Shown here: one piece after another, positions 10,601-46,968 of the stretch | Position numbering within the stretch: position 1 is the first letter of the stretch | Layout: each line of letters opens with the position of its first letter | Assembly (NCBI GenBank): GCA_002269645.1 | Contig: NIVC01000195.1 | Span: forward strand, 62,001 to 126,000 | Source of the DNA: Macrostomum lignano | Taxonomy: Eukaryota | DNA length: 64,000 nucleotides | Direction of reading: 5' to 3' | Notes under the pieces: generated by a model | What the model saw: only the letters and a program-made list of their open reading frames with translations | Told to the model about the DNA's origin: nothing | The model's database searches: none | Position numbers and translations under genes: made by a program

Positions 10601-13600
10601 CGAGCACCTGAAAGTGGCGCGATAAATTTTCAAATTTGTTTTAACTGACCCGAAAAATTAGTTCATAAATTATTACTTGATAAATTTTAGCAATGAAAAG
10701 TGCTTGGCAATTTAAACGCGCTCAAATCGCTTCTTAGAGATTCTTTTCTATTGTCAGTCGCTGTTTCCTCGTATGATTTTCAACTTGCTGCTGCTTTGGC
10801 TTGGCTGAGCAGGCTTTCAGTAATAAACTAGATTGCGCAACTGCTTGCAAAACTTATTTGTAAAATCAATGATTTCTTTCTCTATTCTTTGACGGGGCGT
10901 CGGGAGCTCACAGACTCTCGCGTCAGAGGGCCCTTGGTTCGAATCCACTAGTCTAAAGGCACAGAGAGAGTACATGCCTGACGATTCGAAAGTCAGGACA
11001 TAAGTCAGTCAGTCTGTGCACCCTGTGTGAGCGTGTGCGCGTGTGCATCTCAGGGGTCAGCTAAATGGGGAGGACTGCTGCTCGCCGAAATCTCAACTTG
11101 ACAATCAGCAAATCCGCCTACTAACAGTAGTTAAACAACTCACCCAGGTTGTTGGTGAAGCCGGTGCGCAGGGTGCAGCTGCGCAGGTCCGTCACCTTCT
11201 TCTTGTACTCCGGCCTGATCAGCAGCAGCAGCCGCAGGCCCCAGAAGCTGCTGTGGTGCAGAGTCTGGTACTCGATGCCGAAGGCCAGCTCCAGCTCCTT
11301 CTTCACGTGCTCCTCCCACTTGCGCTCCGTGTCCGAGGACTCCTGCGTGGCCAGGGCGTACAGGTCGTGCGGGATCGATGAGAGCGCCGGGTCGCGCGAC
11401 TTTCCGCTTCCGATGGACTTCAGCCAGGGCAGCAGCGACCAGCGCGGCCACTCGCCAGCTGGAGGGTGCGGGAGATGGACGGGCGTGTGAGTGCGCGTTA
11501 GATACCAGGTTTCCTGAACCAGGTGTCCTGAACCAGGTGTCCTGAACCAGGTGTCCTGAACCAGGTGTCCTGAACCAGGTGTCCTGAACCAGGTGTCCTG
11601 AACCAGGTGTCCTGAACCAGGTGTCCTGAACCAGGTGTCCTGAACCAGGTGTCCTGAACCAGGTGTCCTGAACCAGGTGTCCTGAACCAGGTGTCCTGAA
11701 CCAGGTGTCCTGAACCAGGTGTCCTGAACCAGGTGTCCTGAACCAGGTGTCCTGAACCAGGTGTCCTGAACCAGGTGTCCTGAACCAGGTGTCCTGAACC
11801 AGGTGTCCTGAACCAGGTGTCCTGAACCAGGTGTCCTGAACCAGGTGTCCTGAACCAGGTGTCCTGAACCAGGTGTCCTGAACCAGGTGTCCTGAACCAG
11901 GTGTCCTGAACCAGGTGTCCTGAACCAGGTGTCCTGAACCAGGTGTCCTGAACCAGGTGTCCTGAACCAGGTGTCCTGAACCAGGTGTCCTGAACCAGGT
12001 GTCCTGAACCAGGTGTCCTGAACCAGGTGTCCTGAACCAGGTGTCCTGAAGTCCATCTTCGACCAATTTTCGTGTCTTCTTTAGCAATAAAATATGCAAT
12101 TTAAACCTGAAGTCCATCTTCTTTAATAATTATATTTCCTAAAATCCATAAGGCCGCGGTGCAGCCAAGGACCACTGTATATAGTTATATTCAGTGGTCC
12201 TTGGGTGCAGCAGCCACGTGACTTGGCGACGAAAACAGAAAAATTCCACAGGCTTGCGACGCTTTGGTTCGCAGCGCCCGGGACGCCCGCCTCCCAGCCG
12301 AGGAAGCGGCAGCTGTTGCAAATTAGCTGCGCACCCCGCCGAGTTCCTGGAACTCCGCGGCTGAGTTGCGATTTTTAATTTGCGAAATTCCCCCATCAGC
12401 CAAATGCGCGCAAGGCAGAAAGGTGACTGTCTGCCTGAAGGCTTGCAGTCCGCTTTGCAGGACATTGGGACGGATAAGGCAAGCGGATGCGGGTGGGCAG
12501 CTCGGTCTGAACCTCAGCCTGGACCAGAGCTGCACCGCAGCAGTGACCGCTAGCGGTTGAATTGCTTATTGAACCAGACCTAGTCCCAGTCCCAGTCCCA
12601 GTCCCAGTCCCAGTCCCAGTCCCAGTCCCAGTCCTACTCCTCAGTCCCAGTCTCATTCCCATTCCCACTCCCATTCCCACTCCCATTCCCAGTCCCAGTC
12701 CCATTCCCATTCCCAGTCCCAGTCCCAGTCCCATTCCCATTCCCAGTCCCAGTCCCAGTCCCAGTCCTTACTCCTCAGTCCCAGTCTCATTCCCATTCCC
12801 ACTCCCATTCCCACTCCCATTCCCAGTCCCAGTCCCATTCCCAGTCCCAGTCCCAGTCCCAGTCCCAGTCCCATTCCCAGTCCCAGTCCCATTCCTGAGT
12901 CCCAGTCCCATTCCCATTCCCAGTCCCAGTCCCAGTCCCAGTCCCAGTCCCATTCCTGAGTCCCAGTCCCATTCCCAGTCCCAGTCCCAGTCCCAGTCCC
13001 ATTCCCAGTCCCAGTCCCATTTCTGAGTCCCAGTCCCATTCCCAGTCCCAGTCCTGAGTCACAGTCCCAGTCCCAGTCCCAGGCCCAGTCCCAGTCCCAT
13101 TCCCAGTCCCAGTCCCATTCCCAGTCCCAGTCCCAGTCCCATTCCTGAGTCCCAGTCCCATTCCCAGTCCCAGTCCCAGTCCCAGTCCCATTCCCAGTCC
13201 CAGTCCCATTTCTGAGTCCCAGTCCCATTCCCAGTCCCAGTCCTGAGTCACAGTCCCAGTCCCAGTCCCAGGCCCAGTCCCAGTCCCATTCCCAGTCCCA
13301 GTCCCATTCCCAGTCCCAGTCCCAGTCCCATTCCCAGTCCTAGTCCTGAGTCCCAGTCCCAGTCCCATTCCTGAGTCCCAGTCCCAGTCCCAGTCCCATT
13401 CCCAGTCCCAGTCCCATTCCCAGTCCCAGTCCCATTCCCAGTCCCAGTCCCAGTCCCATTCCCAGTCCCAGTCCCAGTCCCATTCCCAGTCCTAGTCCTG
13501 AGTCACAGTCCCAGTCCCAGTCCCATTCCTGAGTCCCAGTCCCAGTCCCAGTCTCATTCCCAGTCCCAGTCCATTCCCAGTCCCAGTCCCAGTCCTAGTC

Positions 13601-46471: not shown

Positions 46472-46968
46472 GACGATATTCGTGTGTATGTTACGTAAAT
46501 ACAAGCATTATTTTAGCTTTCTAAAAGTGTTTCACAATTAGCTAGCTAGAAAAAAATTGCTTTTGAGACTGGCATTTGATGCTTTACATGTACGAGGATG
46601 TAGGAAACCGCTCTATTGTGAGACCGCTCCATTTGGAGACCGCTCCATTTAGGGATTGTTTATGATAAAAGTATTTACAGATTACATATTCACAGTATAT
46701 TTTACAGTTTACAGTTATTTGCAGTTATTTACAGTATTTACTGACGTCGTATTTAATTGTATATTTAATATTTAACTTTGTTAATACTCTTAGTATTTAA
46801 TTTTTCGTTTTGATGAAATATCTGGACTTGTTTTCTAATAGAAGTCTCAGAAAAATTGAGATAACGGAGAAAATTTCAGAGAAATCTCAGTTATCGTCGT
46901 CAGTAGTTTAAGTTGACCTGGTCGCAAAGTTCTGTAGTGTGTAACAATTGGGCTATCAATAACGAATC

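Follow-up and report, generated by a model that had tools for sequence, protein, structure and literature searches.

Within a 64,000-nt stretch of the genome of the flatworm Macrostomum lignano (assembly GCA_002269645.1, contig NIVC01000195.1, positions 62,001 to 126,000 of the forward strand; hereafter the window, with positions counted from its first nucleotide), four DNA elements of very different sizes, el1 to el4, have the inverted terminus CA(A/G)GGAC(C/T)ACT in common, and each is flanked by its own 8-bp target-site duplication. Which transposon superfamily do these elements belong to, do they derive from a single lineage, and how did the two smallest ones, which consist of termini only, come about? 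All four are very probably non-autonomous members of a cut-and-paste clade of the P superfamily (P element/THAP9 type), which would explain them jointly. The same genome contains a 5.2-kb element that combines near-identical termini and an 8-bp duplication with a complete P-type transposase gene.

The shared terminus and the perfect duplications were read directly from the window. The 38-bp el1 (12166-12203) has the composition CAAGGACCACTG + TATATAGTTATATT + CAGTGGTCCTTG and lies between two copies of GGTGCAGC (12158-12165 and 12204-12211). The 54-bp el2 (26310-26363), also terminus-only, consists of 23-nt perfect inverted repeats CAAGGACCACTGTATATAGCTAT enclosing 8 nt, with TCTTGTCT on the left (26302-26309) and on the right (26364-26371). 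The 179-bp el3 (26560-26738) is bordered by ACATGTAT (26552-26559 and 26739-26746). Its inverted repeats span ~53 nt (33 nt perfect, 96% identity over 53), and each arm contains the terminal block CAGGGACTACT, a GGACG box, and a T-run followed by an AGGCTG box. With its short length, lack of coding sequence, inverted repeats, and 8-bp duplication, el3 has the structure of a miniature inverted-repeat transposable element (MITE); since its 179 bp are mostly inverted repeats, there is no room for a gene. Coding capacity is absent from el1 and el2 as well.

The largest element, el4, is an internally deleted P-type element of 1,117 bp in plus-strand orientation (45347-46463). Its inverted repeats, of ~117 nt on the left (45347-45463) and at 46360-46463 on the right, are 99% complementary across the outer 67 nt and 86% over the whole length. 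The left copy of its duplication, GACGATAT, abuts the element (45339-45346), and the right copy (46472-46479) is separated from the right terminus by an 8-bp filler, ACTCCTTG (46464-46471). The initial annotation had delimited a 1125-bp element ending at 46471, with the terminal motif at both ends of all four elements and a separate 8-bp duplication for each. The duplications stand as described, the second one of el4 being found beyond the filler, and the motif occupies both ends of el1 to el3; the right boundary of el4 was off by 8 bp, and the element as delimited to 46471 does not end in the motif, because its right inverted repeat stops at 46463. The filler equals the terminal octamer AGTCCTTG in 7 of 8 positions, with a single G-to-C change, and looks like a small duplication or filler at the el4 junction. 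Because it has the same length as the duplication (8 bp), it might also be the trace of a second element that entered the el4 terminus and was then excised.

Minisatellite arrays are abundant in the window, and the same 12-nt arms are found in metagenome hairpins that belong to an unrelated repeat without a duplication. Both facts would fit chance palindromes or assembly artefacts in place of transposon insertions. However, the exact sequence CARGGACYACT has 8 matches in the 64-kb window, where an estimated ~0.1 would be expected by chance, and 8 of 8 are the paired termini of el1 to el4. When the window was scanned for any perfect inverted repeat of >=10 nt directly bordered by an exact 8-bp duplication, the matches were el1, el2, el3, and one artefact within el4's own repeat, whereas the same scan of 50 shuffled windows returned 0 matches. 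Like architecture is also seen at independent M. lignano loci in the NCBI assembly. Chance or artefact, an exceedingly improbable origin in any case, is thereby refuted. The motif also matches with one mismatch at 14244 and 41391; neither site is paired with an inverted copy and a duplication, and both matches were taken as chance.

The reading frame of el4 comprises three exons. Exon 1 (45616-45747, plus strand) has 44 codons, encodes the first half of a THAP domain, and ends in a GT donor; exon 2 (45827-45972, plus strand) encodes the second half and holds a 1-bp insertion; exon 3 (46061-46260, plus strand) specifies a post-THAP linker (RG..L...ADEI..FN..D.I..W), followed by a short unrelated tail and a stop codon. 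An intron thus splits the THAP domain; the boundary between exons 2 and 3 was placed by homology. Exon 1 alone scores 30.6 bits against the THAP family (Pfam ID PF05485; cut-off, 23.9), and the spliced frame with one base removed reaches an E value of 3.3e-10, in line with the earlier assignment of a THAP domain to the largest element, albeit a frameshifted one in this copy. The extra A at 45861/45862 (caattgg vs cattgg) breaks the frame at the zinc-binding His of the C2CH motif. The sole match in a database search, the 92-residue M. lignano THAP protein A0A1I8IQ90, is 99% identical and reads ...VCRKHWPDD... where the el4 frame breaks. The window copy is therefore a pseudogene of a multi-copy element; P0001 is an intact paralogue of its THAP product, 99% identical and distinct from the window copy.

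The 158-residue conceptual product of el4 aligns with P-type transposases beyond the ~80-residue THAP domain: over residues 1-136 with P0163 of M. lignano (45% identity, E = 7e-38) and over residues 1-154 with the intact 868-residue transposase P0006 (E = 5e-34). Judged from these alignments, el4 retains the first ~155 codons of a P-type transposase, i.e., the THAP domain plus a conserved linker, and has lost the RNase H catalytic core, the GTP-binding insertion domain, and the C-terminal domain. Short THAP-only proteins are also annotated elsewhere in M. lignano. At least four more, of 94 to 95 residues, are on record (A0A1I8FK87, A0A1I8GLZ0, A0A1I8HV62, and A0A1I8FT96), and P0008, a representative of this cluster, is 49% identical to P0001, which points to several multi-copy families of short THAP-only P derivatives in this genome.

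An exhaustive HMMER search with the THAP protein yielded 786 matches. Seven long proteins (699 to 869 residues) among the best 150 of these 786 were scanned for domains. All 7 contain the N-terminal RNase H domain of P transposases (PF21787), and some of them also the GTP-binding insertion domain (PF21788) or the P-element helix-turn-helix domain (PF12017); hAT-related Pfam domains were reported in none of the proteins scanned. A transposase family profile built from 18 full-length members matches the Drosophila P transposase structure 6p5a with an E value of 7.7e-30, whereas a single-sequence search of PDB sequences with P0006 gave nothing at E <= 0.01. Four residues of the family alignment (D339, D422, D458, and H461) are invariant and a fifth, E658, is nearly so; together they are the counterparts of the DDE triad and the D(2)H motif.

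Related loci were fetched from GCA_002269645.1 by exact protein look-ups, and two of them contain delimitable elements with the same terminal motif. The 5,244-bp element of L004 (NIVC01000293.1, 8688-13931; duplication TGAATAGG) has the termini CACGGACTACTTAA, with an inverted repeat that is perfect over 14 nt. In tblastn alignments, four exons cover residues 1-867 of P0006 in collinear order and show no stop codon outside a presumed intron within the THAP domain; the transposase motifs FDE, CDN, LEKEF, and YDTVH (D-x2-H) are all present, and the first intron has the same position in the THAP domain as intron 1 of el4. On this gene structure, L004 is a candidate autonomous element, and its terminus equals that of el4 at 13 of 14 nt. 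The 3,483-bp element of L002 (NIVC01000736.1, 8935-12417; duplication AGCAAATG; termini CAAGGACTACTTAAGTA) is classed as an internal deletion because it retains only transposase residues 1-191 and 664-868; its first 15 nt are identical to those of el4. A metagenome contig, L001, encodes an intact, intronless 868-residue transposase between the termini CAAGGACAACT and CAAGGACTACT, with no matching 8-bp duplication around the element. The assembly thus holds further related copies (L002, L004, and the product P0001), as the initial annotation had anticipated. Exact look-ups of P0001 and of the window reading frames 27558-28499 and 58793-60775 returned no record. A further ENA contig with a THAP protein, L007, has 33% G+C, comes from another organism, and lacks matching termini; at L003 and L008, which carry the THAP gene P0005/P0151, no element with this terminal motif could be delimited.

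These data bear on the possibility that el1 to el4 belong to the hAT superfamily and that the THAP exon of el4 was captured or is coincidental. The 8-bp duplication and a terminus starting with CAAGG or CAGGG would be compatible with such an origin, since hAT termini are generally CA(G/A)NG-like, and hAT elements such as Ac/Ds, hobo, and Hermes likewise combine 8-bp duplications with short inverted repeats starting with CA(G/A)..G. However, the el4 remnant is collinear with P-type transposases over ~155 residues and has an intron position in common with them; the full-length M. lignano element, which has this terminal motif too, codes for a THAP domain and PF21787 rather than a hAT transposase; and the family profile matches the Drosophila P transposase. 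A hAT transposase is characterized by BED-type zinc fingers and a hAT dimerisation domain, whereas the coding remnants of el4 and L002 and the full-length gene of L004 specify THAP and P-type RNase H. In addition, because hAT excision takes out the whole inverted repeat, it would not generally be expected to leave terminus-only relics of the el1 and el2 kind. These observations largely refute a hAT origin of el3 and el4 and make it unlikely for el1 and el2; for the four elements together it is very improbable. The assignment to the P superfamily, in which target-site duplications are 7 to 9 bp long and typically 8 bp, is upheld by the collinear remnant in el4 and the full-length P-type gene of L004.

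How closely the elements are related to each other can be judged from their ends. An alignment of ten termini (both ends of el3, el4, L002, L004, and L001) reveals three blocks: the terminal CA(N)GGAC(N)ACT, an invariant GGACG ~20 to 35 nt inward, and a T-run followed by AGGC ~45 to 70 nt inward. The GGACG and T-run/AGGC boxes are inferred from their conservation in this alignment as candidate binding sites of the transposase (THAP). In L002 and L004, a 9-bp spacer (TCGTTTATA) lies between the terminal block and GGACG at the left end and is lacking at the right end (compared at 8935-8970 vs 12380-12417 in L002 and at 8688-8725 vs 13895-13931 in L004), whereas in el3 and el4 the spacing is short on either arm. 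When the first 11 nt were left out and alignment scores compared with those of shuffled sequences, el3 matched the right end of L004 (p = 0.0015) and the left ends of L004 (p = 0.012) and L001 (p = 0.010), and el4 matched the right ends of L002 (p < 0.0005) and L004 (p = 0.002). The direct comparison of el3 with el4 under the same exclusion is not significant (p = 0.06 to 0.11). Because each matches the ends of transposase-encoding elements and neither significantly matches the other, el3 and el4 are separate subfamilies that are both tied to the transposase-encoding family. The subterminal blocks that el3 has in common with these elements also speak against its grouping with an unrelated family.

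Across all subfamilies, only the terminal 11 nt are held in common, and el3 and el4 additionally have the same end architecture. By this comparison, the four elements fall into three subfamilies: el1 with el2, el3, and el4. The earlier proposal that one transposase lineage produced a graded series of derivatives is not supported in that form, and no exact autonomous partner was found for any of the four among the loci reached by exact protein look-up. A further protein search with alignment recovered no full-length M. lignano partner specific to el4, and el3 is represented by one copy in the window and by none in the ~86 kb of other M. lignano loci.

The two terminus-only elements agree over 25 nt on the left, with one mismatch, and over 12 nt on the right. 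The sequence of el1 is that of el2 with 2 substitutions and with nt 26-41 missing, the deletion lying between two CTATAT direct repeats. The core of their inverted repeats, TATATAGCTATATA, is itself palindromic, and two ends paired at this palindrome would give 12+14+12 = 38 bp, the size of el1. Both contain the terminal block only: the outer 19 to 27 nt of each end are kept, and the subterminal boxes are absent. This absence, together with the unequal lengths, favors the reading of el1 and el2 as immobile relics formed in place, which is probable, if only moderately so. A longer element would have been excised, and the break would have been rejoined or partly gap-repaired, leaving a relic at the present site; cleavage far inside the inverted repeat would let terminal sequence stay at the donor site. 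End-joined donor sites of P elements retain terminal-repeat sequence between both copies of the duplication, and interrupted gap repair produces internal deletions of any size. The retention of 19 to 27 nt per end is compatible with long staggered donor cleavage and is no proof of it.

Alternatively, el1 and el2 might be mobile nano-MITEs, their 38 to 54 bp of inverted termini being enough for mobilization in trans by a P-type transposase. Each carries the family terminus and is flanked by a perfect 8-bp duplication, the two are near-identical copies at separate sites 14 kb apart, and the relation of el1 to el2 through the CTATAT repeats is what would be expected of descent from an el2-like progenitor. 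However, a relic left in place would equally carry the duplication, and both elements lack the GGACG and T-run/AGGC boxes that are kept in el3, el4, and the transposase-encoding elements. Drosophila P reportedly needs >100 bp per end, including internal transposase-binding sites, a requirement attributed to Mullins, Rio and Rubin in 1989. Moreover, members of an amplified MITE family usually have the same length, unlike these two copies, and both known copies lie within the window, with no third one in the ~86 kb of other M. lignano sequence. On balance, mobility as nano-MITEs is a tentative alternative to the relic reading. That el1 and el2 are functional transposition substrates, so that an inverted repeat of ~19 to 23 nt without a subterminal THAP-binding site would suffice, is rather doubtful.

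A metagenome scan for CAAGGACCACTG-N(2-32)-CAGTGGTCCTTG was uninformative: its two matches are hairpins in an unrelated repeat and have no duplication. In these JGI (Joint Genome Institute) metagenome contigs, the CAAGGACCACTG/CAGTGGTCCTTG arms are found at the tip of a longer hairpin, part of a repeat common to L005 (505-554) and L006 (196-224), with no 8-bp direct duplication at either. An initially considered location of el1 in a promoter was dropped, as the flanking long reading frames (11121-12117) are artefacts of a 14-mer tandem array.

For the clade as a whole, the proposed explanation is that its transposase, supplied in trans, would bind the element ends, with the GGACG and T-run/AGGC boxes as candidate sites, excise the elements, and reinsert them with an 8-bp staggered target cut. 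In this scheme, el3 would be a classic MITE that has kept its ends only, and el4-type copies with intact frames, e.g., the one encoding P0001, could produce a THAP-only DNA-binding protein, analogous to the KP repressor of Drosophila; the window copy of el4 cannot do so because it is frameshifted. Several points weigh against this common P-type explanation. The similarity of el1 and el2 to the other elements is limited to 11 to 12 terminal nt; duplications of 8 bp are made by hAT elements too; and the GGACG and AGGC boxes are putative binding sites. No autonomous element was recovered with the exact termini of el1/el2, el3, or el4, and L004 has C, not A/G, at terminal position 3 and diverges after ~14 nt. 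Finally, el2 keeps 23 to 27 nt per end, which is above the 17 nt of a Drosophila-type stagger, so a simple end-joining footprint would need a longer stagger or some repair synthesis.

The P element of Drosophila has the terminus CATGATGAAATAACATA, which differs from CA(N)GGAC(N)ACT of the M. lignano family. There is no detectable nucleotide similarity between the two, protein similarity is seen by profile only (6p5a), and intron positions and inverted-repeat lengths differ as well. Common to both are 8-bp duplications, terminal inverted repeats with internal subterminal motifs, and a transposase with an N-terminal THAP domain, an RNase H core with a GTP-binding insertion, a DDE triad, and D-x2-H. 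The Drosophila P transposase requires GTP and makes a 17-nt staggered cleavage inside the inverted repeat (PMC7776569). The ends of Drosophila P contain internal transposase-binding sites with a 9/21-bp spacing asymmetry, which the 9-bp difference between the left and right ends of L002 and L004 recalls (PMC7776569). Internally deleted copies of 0.5 to 2.8 kb, 8-bp duplications, and the KP repressor are also known for Drosophila P (PMC7776569). KP (~1.15 kb, encoding a 207-residue THAP-containing repressor) is paralleled by el4 (1,117 bp, THAP plus linker), whose 158-residue product corresponds to transposase residues 1-136/154 without the catalytic domain and is frameshifted in the window copy. 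By this analogy, intact el4-type products could act as repressors.

For el3, the closest parallel is BuT5, a P-associated MITE of the Drosophila repleta group (PMC3698922). Both are short and non-coding, and both have only their terminal regions in common with a P-type element, in the case of BuT5 an autonomous one, including putative binding sites; duplications are 8 to 9 bp in BuT5 and P-derived MITEs and 8 bp in el3. However, BuT5 is ~1 kb long and resides in an insect, and its master copy has been isolated, whereas el3 comes from a flatworm and is linked to L004 by end architecture (p = 0.0015), no master with identical termini having been found. In zebrafish, the Pdre elements are P-type, and activity of zfTHAP9 has been shown experimentally (PMC10983969). 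Pdre/THAP9 resembles the M. lignano family in being P-type outside insects, with short terminal plus subterminal inverted repeats, 8-bp duplications, and one or few full-length copies next to multiple internally deleted ones. It differs in the terminus (CATACCTGTCAAC in Pdre2) and in the assayed activity of zfTHAP9, whereas the flatworm elements are known from sequence alone. The M. lignano family shows the usual composition of a P population, with a full-length copy, internally deleted ones that include a KP-like element, and a MITE.

Several other features of these loci were recorded. L003 (NIVC01003018.1) and L008 (NIVC01002074.1) are collinear over ~15 kb at 92 to 98% identity, including the THAP gene and an INTS15 gene, and are duplicated or homeologous loci. 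L003 also contains a 692-bp element (6458-7149) with 13-nt perfect inverted repeats CCATAGTCAGGAA... and the 8-bp duplication CCTATAAG; it has a terminus unrelated to that of the P-type family described here and may belong to another family that generates 8-bp duplications. Window positions 48781-49033 are ~81 to 85% identical, on the opposite strand, to L002 378-728, part of a WD40/IFT122-like gene, and are probably a paralogous exon. Both IFT122-like copies lie within a few kb of a P-type element, and the two insertions are independent because their duplications differ.

The window further contains ~20 separate minisatellite arrays with periods of 4 to 41 bp and up to ~450 copies, at 1-1049, 3328-3704, 5975-6406, 9823-10300, 11504-12050, 12574-13624, 17037-17654, 18025-18694, 20319-21268, 22165-22788, 28800-30643, 50789-51459, 53519-54619, 55557-56523, and 57284-57788, among others. 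Most of the long reading frames listed for the window, including those beside el1, are created by these arrays. A remnant of a retrotransposon without long terminal repeats occupies adjacent reading frames on the minus strand (36980-39777, possibly to ~41500), with matches to reverse transcriptase (PF00078, E = 5.8e-29) and RNase H (PF00075, E = 7e-11). A single 660-residue reading frame on the plus strand (58793-60775) encodes a seven-transmembrane receptor domain of the secretin family (PF00002, E = 5e-17) and, by exact look-up, is not on record as an annotated protein. Translation by eye additionally indicates an SH2-domain-like exon on the minus strand (24421-25032) and an MCM-type ATPase-like exon on the plus strand (49891-50421).

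Drosophila and, of late, zebrafish are the best-known hosts of P-type transposons. In the literature library searched, no paper was found on P-type elements of flatworms; such elements may nevertheless be catalogued in Repbase or Dfam. The M. lignano clade is an ordinary addition to a well-known superfamily, and most of what is described here is routine repeat annotation; only el1 and el2, the terminus-only pair, are mildly unusual. In practical terms, L004, a candidate autonomous element with defined ends, together with el3 and el4 as short substrates, might offer a native transposon tool, and elements of the L004 type are a possible source of insertional instability in M. lignano. If el1 and el2 were transposition substrates, they would be among the shortest mobile eukaryotic DNAs known. 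If they are footprints, they would constitute a genomic record of a flatworm P-type cut ~19 to 27 nt inside the repeats, compared with 17 nt in Drosophila. Long staggered cleavage is the most unusual feature of P transposition, and el1 and el2 may provide a genomic handle on its conservation outside insects.

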